From sequence record MK250027.1: 64,000 bases of DNA. One strand, written 5' to 3'. Below the pieces are notes generated by a model that saw only the letters and a program-made list of their open reading frames with translations, was not told the origin of the DNA and searched no databases. The translations under genes were made by a program, and so were the position numbers. Positions 6,245 to 50,582 of this stretch are shown here, one piece after another. Position 1 is the first letter of the stretch. Each line of letters begins with the position of its first letter.

Positions 6245-6340
6245 AATCTTTATATTTAAATTGTTAATATTTATGTTTATTATTTACATTACAAAGATAC
6301 ATAATATTTTCCTAAATAAAAAATATATTACCTAAAATTA

Positions 6341-9770: not shown

Positions 9771-11351
9771 TTAAATAGTTCCATCAAGTAATTTATGAAC
9801 AGCGTCTTGACGCGTCTTCCGAATTTCAGCAAGTGTAAACTCTCTTACTAACTTACCATCTTCAAAAACAGTCTTCAATTCATTCTTATCTGATGCTTCC
9901 TCTTCAGGCGTTACACGATCAACTGGTACATACTTACCATTGTCATCTTTTACAACCATAAGAAGTCCACGATGTGATTTCTTTGGCATACCACATACTG
10001 TCTTAGGATCCTTATAAATTTCTATAGCTTTACCATCAACTTTACACCATGTAGACTTACAGGCTATGCCCAAAGAATCTCTGGATCGTACATTATAAGT
10101 AAAGCTTCCTATACCTTCAATAAGGTTAGTTGCTGCAAAACCCTTATCTTCAAGCTGAGAATATGTATCCTTTTGTCGTTTCATATTAATTGAGTCTCCA
10201 TAAAGAAGTCCAATATGTGGATCAAGAATTTTATATCCTTTTTCATTAAATGTTCCACCGAACGTATTCCAAAGGAAATCATAAGAACCCATCTTTACAA
10301 ATGGATCTTCTGCTTCTGGATCACCACAAATAATTTTAACAGGATCACCACTATCAGGACGAATTACTACACGTCCATTACGAGACATAATTTGCTCTTT
10401 ATACTTAGGAACAATCTTTGTCAAGAAATACCAATAATCATAACCATCTGCAACAATTGAAATAATACCATCTGGAAATTCATCAAGCATATTCTTAAAA
10501 TAAACTTCATCATTTGGCTTACCTGTTTCATCTGTTGCATTAGAGCACTCAATAGAATGTTCGGTAGCTGGGACAGTTGCTGCTATCAATTCTTTTTTAG
10601 GATCTGCATTATAATAATACTCAATCATCTTAATTGCTGGAACTGTTTCAGAACCACAAAAAGAAGTAAGATGTGCCATACCAGAAACAATAGATGCTTC
10701 AAATGAACTCATTCCTCTCATAGAGAAATCATGACATAGAAATGCAAGATTAGACATATCGTTAGGATTATAAAAACCAGTTTTCATAGCATGTCTAACA
10801 AGTTCACGTTTAAATACATCAGCTGTTGTTGCAGAAGTAATTGGAAGCCAAAGGACATTTGAAGTCAAAGACTCCAAATAATTTGTGAGCCAAGCAAAAT
10901 CAGGATGTGTATTTGTGATTGTTAAAATAGGGCATCCGATTGGACAATATGAACCTTCAGGAAGTGCCTTAATACGAATAGGAAGATAACCAAGTTTATG
11001 CAATGCAATAATATGATCAACTCCTACTTTCTTTGCAACTGCTTCTCCTAGAAATGTAGTTGTCAAATCTGTATAAGTTTTTCGTACAGTATCTTCATCA
11101 AGATTAAAGAAATAATTATTAAATGTATTAATAAGATACTTCTTAATAAAATACTGAATACCAAACACAACTGCTCCCTCTGTAGCTTCCGGAAAATATT
11201 TATTACTACGAGGAGTAAAGTTACTGAAAAGTTGTGTCATTCCCTTAGGGTACATACAGTGATGACCAAGCTTGTAGCCATCTGTCATAAGCATTGCATT
11301 AAGAAGTATGTCTTCTACCAATACATGCTGTGAATCTTTTACGTTTGTCAT
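9771..11351 (-). CDS. nadV: Nicotinamide phosphoribosyltransferase (NAMPT)
   Basis: TDGYKLGH, HDFSMRG, VPATEHS, RPDSGDP and GLLYGDSI motifs. Confidence 0.95.
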   Translation of the reverse strand: MTNVKDSQHVLVEDILLNAMLMTDGYKLGHHCMYPKGMTQLFSNFTPRSNKYFPEATEGAVVFGIQYFIKKYLINTFNNYFFNLDEDTVRKTYTDLTTTFLGEAVAKKVGVDHIIALHKLGYLPIRIKALPEGSYCPIGCPILTITNTHPDFAWLTNYLESLTSNVLWLPITSATTADVFKRELVRHAMKTGFYNPNDMSNLAFLCHDFSMRGMSSFEASIVSGMAHLTSFCGSETVPAIKMIEYYYNADPKKELIAATVPATEHSIECSNATDETGKPNDEVYFKNMLDEFPDGIISIVADGYDYWYFLTKIVPKYKEQIMSRNGRVVIRPDSGDPVKIICGDPEAEDPFVKMGSYDFLWNTFGGTFNEKGYKILDPHIGLLYGDSINMKRQKDTYSQLEDKGFAATNLIEGIGSFTYNVRSRDSLGIACKSTWCKVDGKAIEIYKDPKTVCGMPKKSHRGLLMVVKDDNGKYVPVDRVTPEEEASDKNELKTVFEDGKLVREFTLAEIRKTRQDAVHKLLDGTI

Positions 11352-43723: not shown

Positions 43724-43996
43724 ATGGAATTAACAAAGGAATATCTTTTAGATCATGGATATGAAACAAATCATCCTGATCGTGTTTTGTGTCGTTTTTA
43801 TAAGACTAATAATGAATCTCCTGAGTGGCGAGTTAGTGTAGAACAGGAATATTTTCCATTGAGTAATAAACTTACATTCAATATTAATTGTTGGAAGTGT
43901 AATGAGAGTGGTGCTATTATTAAGCGTTCTTCCATAGGATATGCTACAACAGTTGAAGAGTTGAATAATGTTATTGCTCTATGTGGAATCGAGTAA
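43724..43996 (+). CDS. Hypothetical protein
   Basis: ORF in operon. Confidence 0.7.
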   Translation: MELTKEYLLDHGYETNHPDRVLCRFYKTNNESPEWRVSVEQEYFPLSNKLTFNINCWKCNESGAIIKRSSIGYATTVEELNNVIALCGIE

Positions 43997-44814
43997 TATT
44001 TAATATAAAGAATTTATGGTTTTGGTATTTAATAAATTATTATACCAAAACATATTTCAATAAATTTAAGAATATGTTTAAACCGTATATTAAAGATGAT
44101 AGAAAATTAACAGCTAAGAATCATATAGAAGAGATGGAAAATTCTTTTCACACTATGATTCAAACGTCTATTAGAGATTCTGTTGTATATATAGATGATG
44201 ATAATGTTTTAGATAAAAGAAATATTATTGTAGAAGATATAAAGACAGAAGATGCAGTATTTAAGTATGGAGAAGATAAACATTTATGTGTATTGAATTT
44301 TTCAAGCTATAAATATCCAGGTGGAGGTTTCATTAAAGGTGCGATAGCTCAAGAAGAAGCATTATGTCATGCAAGTGATTTATATAATGTAATCTCCGAT
44401 GAAAAATTCAATACATATTATGAACATAATCGACAAAATACTAACGGCGGATTATATAAGAATTTTGCTATCTATTCTCCAAATATTATTTTTAATAGAG
44501 TTGCTGATAATTTTATTTCTGTAGATGTAATTACATGCCCAGCACCAAATCTTTCACATTATGAAGGACATATTTATTATGCGATGAAAGCTATGAATGA
44601 TAGAATAAAATTTATTCTTGATATTGCAGAGAAACATAAACAAAAGAATTTGGTTCTTGGTGCATTTGGATGCGGAGTATTTAAGAATGATCCTCAATTT
44701 GTTGCTGAAGTATTTAAGGAATTATTGGAGTCTTCTAAATATCATTTTGAATCCATTATATTCGCAATACCGGGAGGGATTAATTATAAGAAATTTAAAG
44801 AAGTTTTTTCTTAA
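43981..44814 (+). CDS. TIGR02452/DUF2263 bacterial PARG-type macrodomain (start may be downstream)
   Basis: VLNFSSYKYPGGGFIKGAIAQEEALCHAS; VITCPAPN; LVLGAFGCGVFKNDP. Confidence 0.88.
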   Translation: MWNRVIFNIKNLWFWYLINYYTKTYFNKFKNMFKPYIKDDRKLTAKNHIEEMENSFHTMIQTSIRDSVVYIDDDNVLDKRNIIVEDIKTEDAVFKYGEDKHLCVLNFSSYKYPGGGFIKGAIAQEEALCHASDLYNVISDEKFNTYYEHNRQNTNGGLYKNFAIYSPNIIFNRVADNFISVDVITCPAPNLSHYEGHIYYAMKAMNDRIKFILDIAEKHKQKNLVLGAFGCGVFKNDPQFVAEVFKELLESSKYHFESIIFAIPGGINYKKFKEVFS

Positions 44815-45788: not shown

Positions 45789-46259
45789 ATGAGTTTATAT
45801 AAATATCCAAGTATACATGGTTTGAAGGATATTGCAATGATTTATAATGATTCTGAATGGGATAATGCAAAACTTAAAGTGTGGGATCCTGAATATCAAA
45901 GAGAATATAATATATCATTTACAGGTTCTACAAGACCAACTGAAACTGAACCAGGTATAGTAAGTTTCAATATATCAAAAGTAAAAGACGAAAAATCTGC
46001 TGATGAAAAATCAATAGATATTTATTTAGATAAAAGATTTCCTAATATATCTAAATTAGAGAGAAACAAATATGAATTGATTTTTAGAGCAGGTGTTGAA
46101 TATGGAAAGAATGTAAGTAAAAAAGATTTACTTAAAGAATTATTTAAATCACCATGTGAAAAATGTGGTAGTTATATGATGTCAGATAATTGTATTTGTA
46201 ATAAATTATATAACTATTGTGATTTTATAGAAGAAATAAAGAAAAGGATAGAGAAATAA
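45789..46259 (+). CDS. Hypothetical protein with Cys cluster
   Basis: CEKC..CIC..YC near the C-terminus. Confidence 0.65.
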   Translation: MSLYKYPSIHGLKDIAMIYNDSEWDNAKLKVWDPEYQREYNISFTGSTRPTETEPGIVSFNISKVKDEKSADEKSIDIYLDKRFPNISKLERNKYELIFRAGVEYGKNVSKKDLLKELFKSPCEKCGSYMMSDNCICNKLYNYCDFIEEIKKRIEK

Positions 46260-46280
46260 GAATCTCTATCCTTTATTATT
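46242..46280. terminator. Bidirectional intrinsic terminator between convergent genes
   Basis: AAAGGATAGAGA..TCTCTATCCTTT inverted repeat. Confidence 0.75.
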
Positions 46281-46284
46281 TTAT

Positions 46285-46857
46285 TTAATATTCATCATCG
46301 TCATCCCATTCATCGTCAGAATCATCATAATCTTCCTCTTCATCATCAAAATTAGAATCAGAAAGATAAATTTCTTCTATAACTACTTGATTAACTTTGA
46401 ATACCATAAGTCCTTCTGAAAATTCAAGTTCAATATCAATTTCACCATCTTCATTTGCAGGGAATATTTGAATACTTTCATCTTGTTTTAATTCAATTTC
46501 AGGTTTACAATAGGCAATATCAAAAATACCTATTGTACCAGAATCTACATCATATTTTTGATTTGTCATAGAATCATATGTACCATCGCCATATTGAGTT
46601 CCTTGAATAATACCTATAACTTCCTCATCATTTTCAAGAATTCCATCAGGATATTTCTTTGCACCCCATACATTATCATAAATATCTTCTGTTAAACAAT
46701 AACATGGATCACCAATAACAAGCGATTTTACATTTGTTAATGTTGCTGAATAACTACCACTTGTTTGCGTATATTTCTCATTAATTGATTTCTTTACAGA
46801 TTTTGATACTGATTTCATTATACTTTCATATAATGATTTCTTTTGTTTATTATTCAT
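46285..46857 (-). CDS. LYESIM-leader protein with IGDPCY/YGDG/VDSG domain and acidic tail
   Basis: MNNKQKKSLYESIMKSVSKSVKKSINE; LVIGDPCY..GTQYGDG..VDSGTIG. Confidence 0.8.
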   Translation of the reverse strand: MNNKQKKSLYESIMKSVSKSVKKSINEKYTQTSGSYSATLTNVKSLVIGDPCYCLTEDIYDNVWGAKKYPDGILENDEEVIGIIQGTQYGDGTYDSMTNQKYDVDSGTIGIFDIAYCKPEIELKQDESIQIFPANEDGEIDIELEFSEGLMVFKVNQVVIEEIYLSDSNFDDEEEDYDDSDDEWDDDDEY

Positions 46858-46929: not shown

Positions 46930-46963
46930 AAAAAGAGATGTAATTTAATTATTACATCTCTTA
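46930..46963 (-). terminator. Intrinsic terminator closing the radical SAM/FETNSSSTH operon
   Basis: AAGAGATGTAAT..ATTACATCTCTT followed by a T-run on the minus strand; similar hairpins near 463, 7728, 13503, 14619, 21130, 23043, 25716, 28035, 31193, 40770, 50035, 53780, 57251, 62855 and 63531. Confidence 0.75.
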
Positions 46964-46972
46964 AATTATTAA

Positions 46973-47275
46973 TTATCCATCATATCCGTATTTACCGAAT
47001 ACATGAACAATTTCACCGCTTTTAGTTGTATAAGATTTATCATAAGATTCTAGATCATAATCACCGAAGTAATCATCATATGATTTATATCTCCAGCTAT
47101 CTTCTGTAATATCTTCCTCTGATATAGAATCTTTTGAAACTAATTTATTATGATCTCTATCAAGAACATATGTTCCATTTTTCCATCCATTATATTCATC
47201 ATCTGATGCAAATGTCAATGAATGTGTAGAACTTGAGTTAGTTTCAAATACACTTTTCCTTACTTGAATTTTCAT
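46973..47275 (-). CDS. FETNSSSTH-motif protein 4 (100 aa)
   Basis: MKIQVRKSVFETNSSSTHSL. Confidence 0.85.
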   Translation of the reverse strand: MKIQVRKSVFETNSSSTHSLTFASDDEYNGWKNGTYVLDRDHNKLVSKDSISEEDITEDSWRYKSYDDYFGDYDLESYDKSYTTKSGEIVHVFGKYGYDG

Positions 47276-47293
47276 TATATATTATTATATATT

Positions 47294-47857
47294 TTAATTA
47301 CTCTTATAGTATTCCCATGATTTTCCAAAATTTGGACAATCCAACTCTTCATCACTATTATCATTACCTGTTGATACATAACTATTATAATCAAACAAAT
47401 AATTCATAAGTTTTTTATCATTACTTATAACATCTTCGAGAAAATCACCTACTTCATTTCCATGATCTATATAACCACTATCTTCTTCATCATCATTATT
47501 CATAAATTTAATATAAGTATATTCACTACCATCATCATATTTATGAACTTTAACTTTCATATTAGCAGCATATGGAAATAGTGCTTTAATATTATGTTTT
47601 GCAAGAATATCTGTAATTGATTTAATTGCATTATTTACTTTATCAATATTATTCCAATAACAACTTGTAATTGCTTCCCATAGATATTCTGCTTTAGTAG
47701 CAGTGTCAAAATGAATATCAAAATCCCATCCAAATTCGCCTTTACCAAATATTACTTTATCAGGAAATTCATTAATATCAGATTTCTTAATAATGGAAAT
47801 AGAATGTGTTGAACTTGAATTTGTTTCAAATACACTACGTCTAACTTGTACTTTCAT
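47294..47857 (-). CDS. FETNSSSTH-motif protein 3 (187 aa)
   Basis: MKVQVRRSVFETNSSSTHSI; GEFGW, GYIDHG, TGNDN. Confidence 0.85.
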   Translation of the reverse strand: MKVQVRRSVFETNSSSTHSISIIKKSDINEFPDKVIFGKGEFGWDFDIHFDTATKAEYLWEAITSCYWNNIDKVNNAIKSITDILAKHNIKALFPYAANMKVKVHKYDDGSEYTYIKFMNNDDEEDSGYIDHGNEVGDFLEDVISNDKKLMNYLFDYNSYVSTGNDNSDEELDCPNFGKSWEYYKSN

Positions 47858-47881
47858 TTTATTTTATAAAATTAATAATTA

Positions 47882-48547
47882 TTAAATAATATAAATCTTT
47901 GGTTTATAATAAGGTGCATAAGCTTCATCGGCATAAGTAATAGTATTATTATCATCCATAATATTCCAAAAATATTCATTGAATTTTTCTACTGTTAACC
48001 AACCACCATTTTCACCAATATTTTCAAAAAATTTTTTATTTGTATCTGTATTTTTTGTAAATTCAACATATGAACCATATTCAAGTTGATTCTTAACATC
48101 TTGAATATCATACCCATGTTGTTTTGCAATCTTCTTTATATACTCTACAAACTTCTTATATACTTCTGTATCTTCTAACCAATCATCATGATTATCCTCA
48201 AAATAATGGTTTCTATATTCAGCTCTATTATAATCTTCAATATAATATGCATTATTATTTAATTCCATTGCAATATATTGAAGTTTAGCAACCCAATTAT
48301 TAATGATATAATAAATATTAGTCATTTCATCACCATTTTCGAAATCAATACCACGAAGAATAAATGTATGTTCTATAATATAATCCTTTGGATTAAATAT
48401 ACCACAGTCCATATTATCCTTATATTGCTCAAAAATAGCTTTATATACAATATCTTTTACATCATTAATTGTTCCATGTGTAATTTGTAAAGAATGTGTT
48501 GAACTTGAGTTCGTTTCAAACACCCCTCTTCTAATTTGTACTTTCAT
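47882..48547 (-). CDS. FETNSSSTH-motif protein 2 (221 aa)
   Basis: MKVQIRRGVFETNSSSTHSL. Confidence 0.85.
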   Translation of the reverse strand: MKVQIRRGVFETNSSSTHSLQITHGTINDVKDIVYKAIFEQYKDNMDCGIFNPKDYIIEHTFILRGIDFENGDEMTNIYYIINNWVAKLQYIAMELNNNAYYIEDYNRAEYRNHYFEDNHDDWLEDTEVYKKFVEYIKKIAKQHGYDIQDVKNQLEYGSYVEFTKNTDTNKKFFENIGENGGWLTVEKFNEYFWNIMDDNNTITYADEAYAPYYKPKIYII

Positions 48548-49047
48548 TAATCTGGTTCTATATAAATTTTTGTATGTTCATGATTTAAATCTTTATCGTA
48601 ATTGAAATAATCCCTATCAAATATGTCAACTTTTGATTCATCATTAAAAATATATTCTAACAATAATTGCTCAAAGTCTTCATCTTTTTCATCAAATAGG
48701 TCATTAAATACATCTTCATACCCATAGCTATAATTATCATATTCTCCCGTTTCTGAAATAAGGAATACACAATTAATATCATATTTAGATAATACTTTTT
48801 CAATGCGATATTTAGTAGACATAAAATGAGATAGATTATCACCAAATGTCATATAGTCAAATAAGTTATCTAATCTATCTTGAAAATGATTACCTTTATC
48901 TCTTTCTCGCCAAGGTAAACCAAATTTAAGTGTAGTTCCTGCATATAATTTAAGAATTTTATCATCTACAGGTTTTGTACATATAGTTAATGTATGTGTT
49001 GAACTTGAATTAGTTTCAAATACACTATGCCTTATTTGAATTTTCAT
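48547..49047 (-). CDS. FETNSSSTH-motif protein 1 (166 aa)
   Basis: MKIQIRHSVFETNSSSTHTL. Confidence 0.85.
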   Translation of the reverse strand: MKIQIRHSVFETNSSSTHTLTICTKPVDDKILKLYAGTTLKFGLPWRERDKGNHFQDRLDNLFDYMTFGDNLSHFMSTKYRIEKVLSKYDINCVFLISETGEYDNYSYGYEDVFNDLFDEKDEDFEQLLLEYIFNDESKVDIFDRDYFNYDKDLNHEHTKIYIEPD

Positions 49048-49070
49048 AATTTTCCTATTGTTTTATATTA

Positions 49071-49955
49071 TTACTTATTATATTTGTTTCTAATAAATTG
49101 AAACATTTCATCCATAGTCTTATCACCTATAGGGAATCTTTCTTTAGAAATTGAATTCTTTGCAAATTCACCCTTTACTAAATCAATATAAAATGTATAA
49201 CCACCATCATCTCCCATGTAGAATTCATTCCATTCATCATCGGACATAATACGTTTTACATCAAGTTGCTTAATTGCTAGATTATCAAAACTTAATACTT
49301 TAAACTTCTCCGTAATTTCCTTAAGATTATCAAAGATATATTTACGATTTGTTTCAATCATATCATTATGTTCCTTATGGAAATTAACTCCTCGTTGTAA
49401 ATCTTTATATCCAAGGAGAAGAACTTTAAGATTATGATTTGCCAACTTATTAATGTCATCTTCAGATAAAATTCCTACAATAGTATGAAGAACTGTATTA
49501 GGAATACTATTCATTTTCTGGATAAGTTCATCAGATGGTTTTACCAACGAAACACCAATACCATATACGAGTTTATTATCAGACCAATCCTTTAATTTAT
49601 CATAATTATCAAAGAATTGTTTTTGATTTACTGTAATATTAGCAAATACTTTCTTCGATTTAAGAAAATTAAGGAACTTATCAAGATCAGGGTGATCAAG
49701 GTCATTACCATTCAATGCAATTTCTGTATATGGATGAAGTGTATTTATAAATGGATATGTAAACAAGTCACCATGTTTCCCATGTGGCGAACATCCTTCA
49801 TAACAAAACGCACAGCCTATATTACACTTATCTGTTAATTTACAGTCTATATTCTCACTGTATGCAGGAATAAACTCATCATCATTTGTACGACGAATTT
49901 TTGTTCCATCACCCAAAATTGTTACGATATAATTACCATTCTTATAACTTGGCAT
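49071..49955 (-). CDS. Radical SAM enzyme
   Basis: CNIGCAFC (CxxxCxxC); no C-terminal SPASM cysteines. Confidence 0.9.
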   Translation of the reverse strand: MPSYKNGNYIVTILGDGTKIRRTNDDEFIPAYSENIDCKLTDKCNIGCAFCYEGCSPHGKHGDLFTYPFINTLHPYTEIALNGNDLDHPDLDKFLNFLKSKKVFANITVNQKQFFDNYDKLKDWSDNKLVYGIGVSLVKPSDELIQKMNSIPNTVLHTIVGILSEDDINKLANHNLKVLLLGYKDLQRGVNFHKEHNDMIETNRKYIFDNLKEITEKFKVLSFDNLAIKQLDVKRIMSDDEWNEFYMGDDGGYTFYIDLVKGEFAKNSISKERFPIGDKTMDEMFQFIRNKYNK

Positions 49956-50084
49956 AATTTCTTTATTTTAAAAAATTAATAAATTTAAATTTAATATCAC
50001 GAAGATACATAATTTGTTTATATATAAAAAAGAAAATAGAGAATATCTAACATTAATTAGTAAATATTCTCTATTTTAAAAAAT

Positions 50085-50582
50085 TTATAATTCTATTATT
50101 TCTAATTTATTATAAGGTATTATTCCATTATAAAAATATGTTGGATCTATTTCATCTTCAGATTCTTCATCATATATGTTGTTTTGATCTAAAGAAAGTT
50201 TATTTAAATCAATATCAGATGTTTTAATTTTAAATACAATAATTTCTAATTCTTTTTCATATCGATCTTCATATTCTTCAGCAAACTCTTCAAAATCATC
50301 GGAACATTCCAAATATGATTCCGCAACATATTCATCTGTTGCTAAAAAAACACCATGACTTATATTTTCATATGGCGTATTTTCATAATTCCAAAATCGT
50401 TTCTTTGGTATTTTTGCACCTAACCCATTTTTCTTTATTGAACGCAAATAACAAGATGGAGTTGCATGATAAAAATATTCAGGTATATTATAATTGATTG
50501 TTTCATTAATTGATTTCTTTACAGATTTAGAAATAGATTTTATTATATTTTCATATAATGTTTTCTTTTGTATAGAATTCAT
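50085..50582 (-). CDS. LYESIM-leader protein with ADP-ribosyltransferase-fold (KptA/Tpt1-like) domain
   Basis: YFYHATPSCYLRSIKKNGL..GVFLATDEYVAESY pattern (H-x-T..SI..GL; V-[FY]-L); leader MNSIQKKTLYENIIKSISKSVKKSINE. Confidence 0.65.
   Translation of the reverse strand: MNSIQKKTLYENIIKSISKSVKKSINETINYNIPEYFYHATPSCYLRSIKKNGLGAKIPKKRFWNYENTPYENISHGVFLATDEYVAESYLECSDDFEEFAEEYEDRYEKELEIIVFKIKTSDIDLNKLSLDQNNIYDEESEDEIDPTYFYNGIIPYNKLEIIEL

Follow-up and report, generated by a model that had tools for sequence, protein, structure and literature searches.

A radical SAM enzyme of a giant gut phage and the N-terminally tagged proteins encoded beside it

Why should a phage encode one radical SAM (rSAM) enzyme next to four proteins that share little more than their first 20 residues? 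The question is raised by a small operon in a Prevotella Lak megaphage (MK250027.1). The window, meaning the whole 64,000 nt stretch of DNA that was analysed, is 100% identical to Prevotella phage Lak-B7/B8. The original prediction described a self-contained operon in which the shared N-terminal motif is a recognition, modification or self-processing site and the variable bodies are interchangeable effectors. The observation is correct, as every element listed is present on the minus strand:

49999–50012 (minus strand), promoter-like box TTATGTATCTTCGT, about 45 nt upstream of the rSAM start codon
49071–49955 (minus strand), radical SAM enzyme, 294 aa
48547–49047 (minus strand), tag protein 1, 166 aa
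47882–48547 (minus strand), tag protein 2, 221 aa, overlapping the previous stop by 1 nt
47294–47857 (minus strand), tag protein 3, 187 aa, the canonical 'long' family
46973–47275 (minus strand), tag protein 4, 100 aa, the conserved 'short' family
46933–46962 (minus strand), intrinsic terminator-like hairpin followed by a T-run, 10 nt after the last stop codon

The promoter-like box contains a Bacteroidota-type −7 element (TAnnTT[TC]G) and belongs to a motif family found 7 times in the window against 0.18 expected by chance, although promoter function is inferred. The terminator-like hairpin has a 12-pair stem (3 such sites were found in the region against 0.6 expected). All four tag proteins begin MK[IV]Q[IV]Rx[SG]VFETNSSSTH, and a six-frame scan found the motif only at these four places in the window. 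All five genes end in TAA and contain no in-frame TAG or TGA. The absence of TAG had been taken to mean that the operon can be translated in the host code early in infection; the remark is true, but it holds for the whole block of ~13 kb (about 40–52.9 kb) and not for this operon alone. ORFs from 52933 onward need 5–14 TAG read-throughs.

The enzyme carries a single CxxxCxxC cluster motif (C44, C48, C51, in DKCNIGCAFC) and an N-terminal three-stranded beta sheet. In the alignment of its homologues C51 is invariant and C44 and C48 are at least 90% conserved. It matches PHROG 16999 ('Fe-S oxidoreductase'; E 2e-36). Against the Pfam Radical_SAM model (PF04055) the window protein itself scored only 11.7 bits (E 0.29; cut-off 29.5 bits), while 8 of 16 close homologues matched (best E 4.2e-8) and the proteins of phages Arash, RM378 and Ma-LMM01 passed at 51.4, 37.8 and 31.5 bits. 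The AF2 model (pLDDT 90.6) has the partial TIM-barrel fold shared with solved rSAM enzymes. Foldseek matched it to SkfB (E 4.5e-7), and in a VIA fold comparison the top 29 entries were all rSAM enzymes. The nearest solved folds are all peptide or protein modifiers: SkfB (Z 17.4, rmsd 3.9, 263 residues aligned), SuiB (17.1), EpeE (15.3), ChlB (14.2), anSMEcpe (13.9) and PqqE (13.6). The C-terminal cysteine motif that binds one or two auxiliary clusters in the SPASM/twitch enzymes is absent: the window protein has no Cys after residue 55, and of 159 homologues, 72 have none beyond the cluster region and 142 have at most two. There is also no conserved cysteine to act as H-atom donor. A search of NCBIfam found no RiPP-maturase model matching the enzyme (best rSAM_skfB, E 0.088 over 18 residues).

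The bodies behind the tag were described as barely alignable, which is nearly right. With the tag removed, the 166-aa body shows weak profile similarity to the 187-aa family (hhalign probability 76%, E 2e-5) and is a probable divergent relative of it, lacking the DH and TGNDN motifs, while the 221-aa and 100-aa bodies show none. The 187-aa protein has at least 320 homologues, matches PHROG 28997 (E 2.6e-20) and carries the motifs GEFGW, YIDH and TGNDN and a C-terminal K-x-N. Its body is confidently predicted by AF2 (overall pLDDT 91.4, body above 90), but tag residues 1–13 are below 50 and so are not part of the body fold. No match to this model was found in the PDB (Foldseek E ≥ 0.05; VIA best Z 2.9 against 48,161 chains). 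BFVD returned one uncharacterised protein, and the ESM Atlas only the protein's own family plus a 261-aa Tad2-like cluster at TM 0.56, which is kept as a lead only. Orthologues of the 221-aa protein occur in Lak-A-like phages; its Atlas model is poor (pLDDT 0.53), and the Atlas look-up of the 166-aa protein returned no model. The 100-aa protein, which has an acidic linker after the tag and a C-terminal GE.V.(A/V)FG.YGYDG end, is not a truncated pseudogene, as 86 unique members of this short family share the same ends (C-terminal FGYYGYDG) and sit next to the long family in distant phages; the same long–short–rSAM order is seen at another locus (L002). Pfam, NCBIfam and PADLOC gave nothing for any tag protein, PHROGs gave only bins of unknown function, and profiles of neither the 187-aa family nor the enzyme found anything meaningful in the PDB by sequence. 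A metallophosphoesterase, PP-loop or HAD-like N-terminal motif was considered, but no profile supports this.

Is the pairing peculiar to this phage? Among 80 IMG/VR loci found through the tag protein, 78 have an rSAM homologue on the same strand, usually within 50 bp, with 1–5 tag genes per locus. In the other direction, 66 of 80 genome loci found through the rSAM carry the strict tag and nine more carry variants (ETNSSSNH, ETNSSSHH, ETNSSAVH, ETNSSI[ED]H), giving 75 of 80; three of the five misses are contig-edge cases. Among 110 dereplicated loci, tag proteins (103 of 110) are the only neighbour family present in more than 7 loci, and the existence of other conserved module components was rejected on this ground. 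A complete 554-kb Lak-A-like genome has five tags, all in the cluster beside the rSAM, and Ma-LMM01 and Arash each have exactly one, beside or fused to the rSAM. Hundreds of proteins fuse a tag-bearing body to the rSAM. The fusion is represented by Salmonella phage Arash gp146c (tag, body and rSAM), which has 726 database relatives. The best 120 of these cover at least 92% of the query; 115 carry an N-terminal xATNSSS[ST]H and all 120 carry CxxxCxxC.

Over 159 unique proteins the tag residues R, E, N, S and S are conserved at 100%, H at 99%, and T and the third S at 98%, while the bodies fall into 24 BLAST clusters. A tag-only profile found 7,180 clusters (50% identity) in 1.84 billion proteins, and in the 150 hits listed the tag lies almost always at residues 1–35. 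Conservation at the DNA or RNA level, or by gene conversion, was rejected, since the four window copies differ at synonymous sites and the tag persists in phages as different as the AT-rich Lak phages, Arash and Rhodothermus phage RM378; the tag is selected at the protein level. Two conditions that would have counted against the original prediction are not fulfilled: tag proteins do not usually occur without the rSAM, and the four do not share one ordinary fold in which the tag is merely a strand, as residues 1–13 are unplaced in the monomer model and the bodies fall into several families that are not detectably related.

The enzyme was co-folded with one of the four tag proteins together with SAM and 4Fe-4S. 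The three runs scored 0.07, 0.74 and 0.89 (median 0.74), and the best of three controls 0.05; that mark was reached by 58 of 80 solved complexes and 2 of 110 mismatched pairs. The runs agree in at least 33% of their contacts and the partner pLDDT is at least 69. Only residues 1–27 of the partner form the predicted interface, and tag residues 2–6 pair with enzyme residues 18–23 and 243–248. A co-fold score is, however, the model's own confidence, one run scored 0.07, and the calibration did not include ligands or user-supplied alignments. Interface residues are enriched for conserved columns (37 of 70 against 45 of 224, p = 3e-7), but a conserved barrel interior would be so enriched whatever sits in it. 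The enzyme's N-terminal three-strand sheet (residues 3–23), which is predicted to pair with the tag, aligns with the N-termini of SkfB and SuiB, but it is about 30 residues and not a full winged-helix RRE, and RM378 p108 lacks it.

The interpretation offered by the original prediction is thus partly supported: the evidence favours the tag as a recognition site for the adjacent enzyme, whereas modification, self-cleavage and an effector role of the bodies remain conjecture. With moderate confidence, the operon is best explained as a self-contained two-component system of a single-cluster rSAM enzyme of the peptide-maturase structural group and its client proteins. In this view, the tag is a minimal leader plus core at the extreme N-terminus of each client. 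Residues 2–10 (K-x-Q-[IV]-R-x-x-V-F) would dock as a beta strand against the enzyme's small N-terminal sheet, as RiPP leaders dock on RRE domains, and the invariant loop (E/A)-T-N-S-S-S-x-H would be fed into the SAM/[4Fe-4S] barrel, where the 5'-deoxyadenosyl radical would modify one residue, most plausibly one of the three serines. One enzyme would thereby mature one to five folded proteins with different bodies (four in this phage). The genes, the tag, the near-obligate genetic coupling, the fusions, the fold class of the enzyme and the lack of auxiliary clusters are established by the analysis, whereas the placement of the tag, and only the tag, in the conserved cavity rests on a model. Reductive cleavage of SAM, covalent modification of the tag, the residue hit, the chemistry and the benefit to the phage are inferred only, without experimental or mass data. 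Some features sit uneasily with this view. Near-invariance of 8–9 consecutive residues is stronger than is usual for a mere substrate and would also fit a permanent part of the active site; in the fused proteins a substrate role would mean one turnover per molecule; and without auxiliary clusters, which its structural neighbours use for two-electron oxidations, or a conserved Cys donor, the chemistries of those neighbours (thioether, formylglycine, Cys-dependent epimerisation) cannot simply be transferred.

The alternatives appear less likely. The tag might be an obligate docking or active-site element that plugs into the rSAM barrel to form a holoenzyme, its Ser-rich loop helping to bind a nucleotide, nucleic acid or small molecule, with the bodies as interchangeable specificity or regulatory subunits. 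The genetic coupling fits this equally well, covalent fusion is the common outcome for subunits that stay together, and near-invariance of the TNSSSxH loop across phages of bacteria and contigs binned with archaeal genomes resembles a ligand-binding loop more than a substrate. The canonical body has its own invariant polar cluster (H18, D131, H132, T163, D166, N167, K185, N187), which suggests a second catalytic or binding site, and nearby genes are often for nucleic-acid or RNA-repair functions (Thg1, RlaP, PARG, RNA ligase, primase). In the co-fold, however, the body makes no confident contact with the enzyme, no conserved neighbour gene indicates a small-molecule pathway, all the nearest structural relatives act on peptides, and most non-canonical bodies lack the polar cluster; this reading is considered unlikely.

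More doubtful still is a self-processing or proteolytic maturation site, N-terminal-nucleophile-like or pyruvoyl-like, with the rSAM having a separate job or only triggering cleavage, for example by a radical-initiated serine dehydration followed by backbone hydrolysis that would leave a pyruvoyl or keto N-terminus on the body. Pyruvoyl enzymes and Ntn hydrolases cleave before Ser/Thr, the invariant Ser-Ser-Ser-x-His lies exactly where the ordered body begins (strand from residue 16), after 13 residues that are disordered in the monomer model, and H18 and the D/H/D/N/K cluster lie in the canonical body. Yet propeptides are normally poorly conserved whereas residues 1–13 are among the best conserved here, the canonical body matches no pyruvoyl or Ntn fold, bodies without the polar cluster keep the tag, and pure self-processing would not explain the near-obligate coupling and fusion to the rSAM. 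A merely syntenic association, in which the tag is an oligomerisation strand, degron or targeting signal of a paralogous family and the rSAM acts on something unrelated, is very unlikely. Paralogue families can keep one conserved segment, and the two genes flanking this operon share a different N-terminal leader, which shows that shared leaders occur in this phage, but adjacency in about 95% of loci in both directions, across very distant phages and with variable gene order, speaks against it, as do the widespread fusions, the absence of the tag elsewhere in complete genomes and the co-fold passing its controls.

The closest solved folds are those of RiPP rSAM maturases with leader recognition (SkfB, SuiB, CteB, ChlB, PqqE, EpeE/YydG; Z 13–17). 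As in those systems, the substrate-like gene is adjacent, and the tag has an N-terminal leader-like strand followed by a short conserved core; the strand is predicted to add to the enzyme's N-terminal sheet, as leaders do on RRE domains. Here, however, the auxiliary-cluster cysteines are missing, the 'leader' is only about 10 residues and starts at Met1, and the 'core' is followed by bodies of about 80–250 aa from several families rather than being a short released peptide, with up to five different proteins per enzyme. Anaerobic sulfatase-maturating enzymes (anSME/AtsB) modify a short conserved Ser/Cys-containing motif near the N-terminus of several different folded clients, creating a catalytic residue, but the tag, R-x4-(E/A)-T-N-S-S-S-x-H, is not their (C/S)-x-(P/A)-x-R motif, the clients gave no sulfatase Pfam hit or PDB fold match, and the two auxiliary clusters needed for the two-electron oxidation are absent. 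Glycyl-radical-enzyme activases (PflA, NrdG) are small single-cluster enzymes that act on a conserved loop of a folded partner and require no electron sink, and homologues of the phage enzyme give weak Fer4_12 hits and have a CxxxCxxCH(E/N)-like motif. The tag is, however, N-terminal rather than C-terminal and has no RVxG[FWY] loop or invariant Gly (the position two residues before the conserved Phe is Gly in only 62%), the bodies bear no resemblance to the 10-stranded barrel of glycyl radical enzymes, and the fold neighbours are SPASM-group enzymes rather than PflA. The comparisons with anSME and the activases are functional analogies only. The same pair occurs in cultured phages (Ma-LMM01 gp128/gp130, RM378 p108/p106, Arash gp146c), annotated generically as 'Fe-S oxidoreductase', 'methyltransferase' or 'hypothetical protein'. 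No function, pairing or tag was found described in the records or in the searchable literature on the motif, on rSAM with phage, anti-defence or Lak, on Ma-LMM01 or on Arash.

A bolder reading, not excluded but regarded as improbable on present evidence, is a previously unrecognised kind of protein maturation, in which an auxiliary-cluster-free rSAM enzyme recognises a universal N-terminal tag and converts one of its invariant serines into a new residue or cofactor (for example, a Ser-derived electrophile, keto group or radical site) that several unrelated folds then use, including a canonical body whose predicted fold has no PDB match. Such a system would have spread through phages of Bacteroidota, Bacillota, cyanobacteria, enterobacteria and thermophiles, and is also seen on contigs binned with archaeal genomes.

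The module is abundant and recurs in thousands of phages and prophages, with at least 5,600 rSAM homologues at 90% clustering besides the 7,180 tag-bearing clusters, and it occurs in cultured phages of Microcystis, Salmonella and Rhodothermus as well as in Lak megaphages. The enzyme is strongly conserved, at 60–70% identity across many gut phages, and in some homologues it carries inteins at the cluster motif, yet neither partner has a described function. If the tag is modified, this would be a new radical SAM post-translational chemistry on folded proteins and a portable enzyme/tag pair of about 20 residues, and it would also assign a function to a large block of phage genes that currently have none.

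On the minus strand between 50012 and 46933, the window, which is 100% identical to Prevotella phage Lak-B7/B8 (a megaphage of about 550 kb), carries the following features:

49999–50012, minus strand: promoter-like box, TTATGTATCTTCGT
49071–49955, minus strand: gene for a 294 aa protein with the cluster motif Cys44-x3-Cys48-x2-Cys51
downstream of this, minus strand: four tightly packed genes specifying proteins of 166, 221, 187 and 100 aa (gaps between them of 23, -1, 24 and 18 nt)
46962–46933, minus strand: hairpin followed by a T-run

All four small proteins begin MK[IV]Q[IV]Rx[SG]VFETNSSSTH (the tag), and a six-frame scan found this motif nowhere else in the 64 kb. The arrangement described in the original prediction, an operon of a radical SAM (rSAM) enzyme and four divergent proteins sharing an N-terminal motif, is confirmed. 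The absence of in-frame TAG codons was also correctly noted, as the five genes have no in-frame TAG or TGA, but this is not a property of the operon alone. The TAG-free block extends over about 13 kb (roughly 40–52.9 kb), while the next ORFs, from 52,933 onward (281, 757 and 347 aa), need 6, 14 and 5 TAG = Q read-throughs, respectively, marking a boundary between genes readable in the standard code and recoded genes. The promoter-like motif, [AT]TATGTATCTT[TC]GT, occurs seven times in the window (at 6291, 13472, 30839, 31161, 44837, 46903 and 49999) against 0.18 expected by chance, which suggests a shared phage promoter class for TAG-free genes. It contains a Bacteroidota-type -7 element, a reading inferred from the known consensus.

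The surroundings of the operon show several further features. The two flanking genes (nt 46285–46857, 190 aa, and nt 50085–50582, 165 aa, both minus strand) share a different N-terminal leader of about 27 residues, MN..QKK.LYE.I.KS.SKSVKKSINE, and are otherwise unrelated. Only two copies of this leader are present in the window, but it may represent a second shared-leader system in this phage. The 165 aa protein has a weak NCBIfam match to RNA 2'-phosphotransferase (E = 0.1). A perfect 12 bp stem hairpin (nt 46243–46274), scored as a terminator on both strands, lies between the converging plus-strand block (ending at 46259) and the 190 aa minus-strand gene. A microbial-type PARG catalytic domain (nt 43981–44814, plus strand; Pfam E = 6e-25) is encoded about 2 kb from the operon, and in a distant phage contig (L002) PARG (nt 10393–11202), Thg1 and RlaP are found 1–3 kb from the same module. 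None of these is conserved across loci, each occurring in at most 7 of 110.

The four small proteins are members of conserved families that share only the tag. The canonical long family, represented by the 187 aa protein, has more than 320 full-length homologues at 35–45% identity. Their alignment shows an invariant N-terminal R6, F10, E11, N13, S14, S15, S16 and H18, the body motifs GEFGW, Y-I-D131-H132 and T163-G-N-D166-N167, and a C-terminal K185-x-N187. The 100 aa protein is not a fragment, as it belongs to a short family with 86 unique members in the sample examined, which share the tag, an acidic linker and a C-terminal ...GE.V.(A/V)FG.YGYDG end. In the distant phage contig the gene order is long, short, then rSAM. 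One protein (P0017, 141 aa) joins the N-terminal half of a short-family protein to the C-terminal half of a long-family protein, and so is either a recombinant or an assembly chimera, while two others (P0247 and P0248) contain two tags in one ORF, from tandem fusion or a merged gene call. With the tag removed, 292 unique tag proteins fall into 24 BLAST clusters. Profile–profile comparison links the 166 aa body weakly to the canonical one (hhalign probability 76%, E = 2e-5) but does not link the 221 aa or short bodies to anything.

Conservation of the tag is extreme. Over 159 unique proteins, the residues R, E, N, S and S are 100% conserved, T and the third S 98%, and H 99%. A 36-column profile of the tag alone found 7,180 cluster representatives (E ≤ 0.001) among 1.84 billion proteins, 1,186 of them at E ≤ 1e-10, and in nearly all of the 150 hits listed the match starts at residue 1. 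The four copies in the window differ at synonymous sites, and the tag survives in unrelated phage genomes. Selection therefore acts on the peptide.

The coupling of the tag to the rSAM gene is near-obligate. When IMG/VR loci were seeded from the canonical tag family, 78 of 80 had an rSAM homologue on the same strand, usually within 50 bp, with 1–5 tag genes. When genome and metagenome-assembled genome loci were seeded from the rSAM, 66 of 80 had an ORF with the strict tag pattern within 3 kb on the same strand, and nine more had variants of it (ETNSSSNH, ETNSSSHH, ETNSSAVH, ETNSSI[ED]H), giving 75 of 80. Three of the five loci without a tag are contig-edge cases. After dereplication at 85% rSAM identity, tag proteins were present in 103 of 110 loci, and no other neighbour family was present in more than 7. 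A complete 554 kb Lak-A-like genome has five tag matches, all in one cluster beside the rSAM. The fifth of these tag genes (G001:C1:228303–228407; locus L010) contains one in-frame TAG, which is either read as an amino acid in the phage code or indicates that the gene is decaying. Microcystis phage Ma-LMM01 and Salmonella phage Arash have one tag match each, beside or fused to the rSAM. Gene order varies, with the rSAM first in Lak phages and last in most others. The module has a wide host range, occurring on contigs binned with Bacillota, Bacteroidota, Saccharibacteria, Absconditabacterales and Methanomassiliicoccaceae, and in the cultured phages Ma-LMM01 (gp130/gp128), RM378 (p106/p108) and Arash.

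The two partners are also found fused. Arash gp146c (476 aa, annotated as 'methyltransferase') consists of an N-terminal MYLTQIRYGFATNSSSSH, followed by a canonical-type body (FGYGW, YIDH, GGNDN) and then the rSAM domain. The database holds 726 relatives of this architecture, of which the 120 best are 435–570 aa long and cover at least 92% of the query. Of these, 115 have an N-terminal xATNSSS[ST]H and all 120 have CxxxCxxC. The universal core of the tag is therefore R-x4-(E/A/S)-T-N-S-S-S-x-H.

The 294 aa enzyme belongs to PHROG 16999 (E = 2e-36). The window protein scores below the Pfam Radical_SAM threshold, but half of its close homologues and the versions in cultured phages pass. The family is large (5,601 hits, many at 60–70% identity), and some members (P0225, P0130, P0132 and the homologue at L126, nt 274–2328) carry an intein (PF14890/PF07591) inserted immediately before the third cysteine of the CxxxCxxC motif (...VHN|CYEGC...). 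An AlphaFold2 model (pLDDT 90.6) is closest to peptide-modifying rSAM maturases, namely SkfB (Z = 17.4, RMSD 3.9, 263 residues aligned), SuiB (17.1), EpeE (15.3), ChlB (14.2), anSMEcpe (13.9), PqqE (13.6) and CteB (13.2). It lacks, however, what defines the SPASM or twitch domains of those enzymes. There is no cysteine after residue 55 in the window protein, and of 159 homologues 72 have none there and 142 have at most two. It is therefore a single-cluster enzyme with the architecture of a peptide maturase and a small N-terminal three-stranded sheet (residues 3–23).

The AlphaFold2 model of the canonical 187 aa protein has a pLDDT of 91.4, but residues 1–13 are below 50, and the best-conserved segment is thus not part of the predicted fold of the monomer. 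The ordered body (residues 16–187) has no match in the PDB, where Foldseek returned nothing better than E = 0.05 and an exhaustive VIA-align search gave a best Z of 2.9 over 48,161 chains. A search of BFVD returned only one uncharacterised viral protein. In the ESM Atlas, a viral cluster annotated as Thoeris anti-defence 2-like (261 aa, PF11195 Tad2-like in 97% of members) shares the canonical body fold (TM = 0.56 over 134 residues). This may be a body/Tad2 fusion and a hint towards nucleotide-signal binding.

The enzyme and the 187 aa protein were co-folded with SAM and a 4Fe-4S cluster, using family alignments for both proteins. The three runs scored 0.07, 0.74 and 0.89 (median 0.74), and the best of three controls scored 0.05. 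That mark was reached by 58 of 80 solved complexes and by 2 of 110 mismatched pairs, although this calibration did not include ligands or user-supplied alignments. The runs agree in at least 33% of contacts, and the pLDDT of the partner is at least 69. The confident interface on the partner is limited to residues 1–27. Tag residues 2–6 are predicted to pair with enzyme residues 18–23 (the third strand of the N-terminal sheet) and 243–248, and the rest of the tag to contact residues 52–53, 78–83, 104–108, 131–134, 153–157, 177–184 and 215–226. These form the conserved barrel lining, as 37 of 70 interface residues are conserved against 45 of 224 elsewhere (p = 3e-7). While this is a prediction and not a measurement, it agrees with the genetics and with the fold class of the enzyme.

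The explanation considered somewhat more likely than not is that the module is a protein-level analogue of leader-guided rSAM maturation. In this view, the first ~10 residues would act as a minimal leader, bound by strand addition, the TNSSSxH loop would be the core presented to the 5'-deoxyadenosyl radical, and one enzyme would mature one to five client proteins. The genes, the tag, their linkage and their fusion were observed directly in sequence data and the placement of the tag in the enzyme is predicted, whereas binding, modification and the chemistry used are inference only. With no auxiliary cluster and no conserved cysteine, redox-neutral or single-electron-completed outcomes are more plausible than oxidations of the anSME or sactisynthase type, and candidates are epimerisation with a non-Cys donor, viperin-like dehydration of Ser, C-C scission and radical installation. 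The interpretation offered in the original prediction, that the motif is a recognition or modification site for the rSAM enzyme or a self-processing site, is partly supported.

The main alternative, held to be possible but less likely, is that the tag is a permanent plug that completes the active site, with the bodies serving as specificity subunits. The extreme conservation of the whole loop and the frequency of fusions favour this view, while the body-free interface and the peptide-maturase fold class count against it. Self-processing at the Ser run is unlikely, and mere synteny of the two genes is more unlikely still.

There is no Pfam or NCBIfam family for the tag proteins, and no description of either partner was found in the searchable literature. 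Existing labels are 'Fe-S oxidoreductase', 'methyltransferase' and 'hypothetical protein'. As interpreted here, the system would work like RiPP maturase/leader pairs, and like anSME/sulfatase or activase/glycyl-radical-enzyme pairs, yet it does not satisfy the defining criteria of any of these, as there are no auxiliary clusters, no C/S-x-P-x-R motif, no glycine loop and no short released peptide. On this interpretation it is best regarded as a variation on such enzyme–client pairs, and there is a possibility, still a doubtful one, that it represents a new maturation chemistry serving several protein folds.
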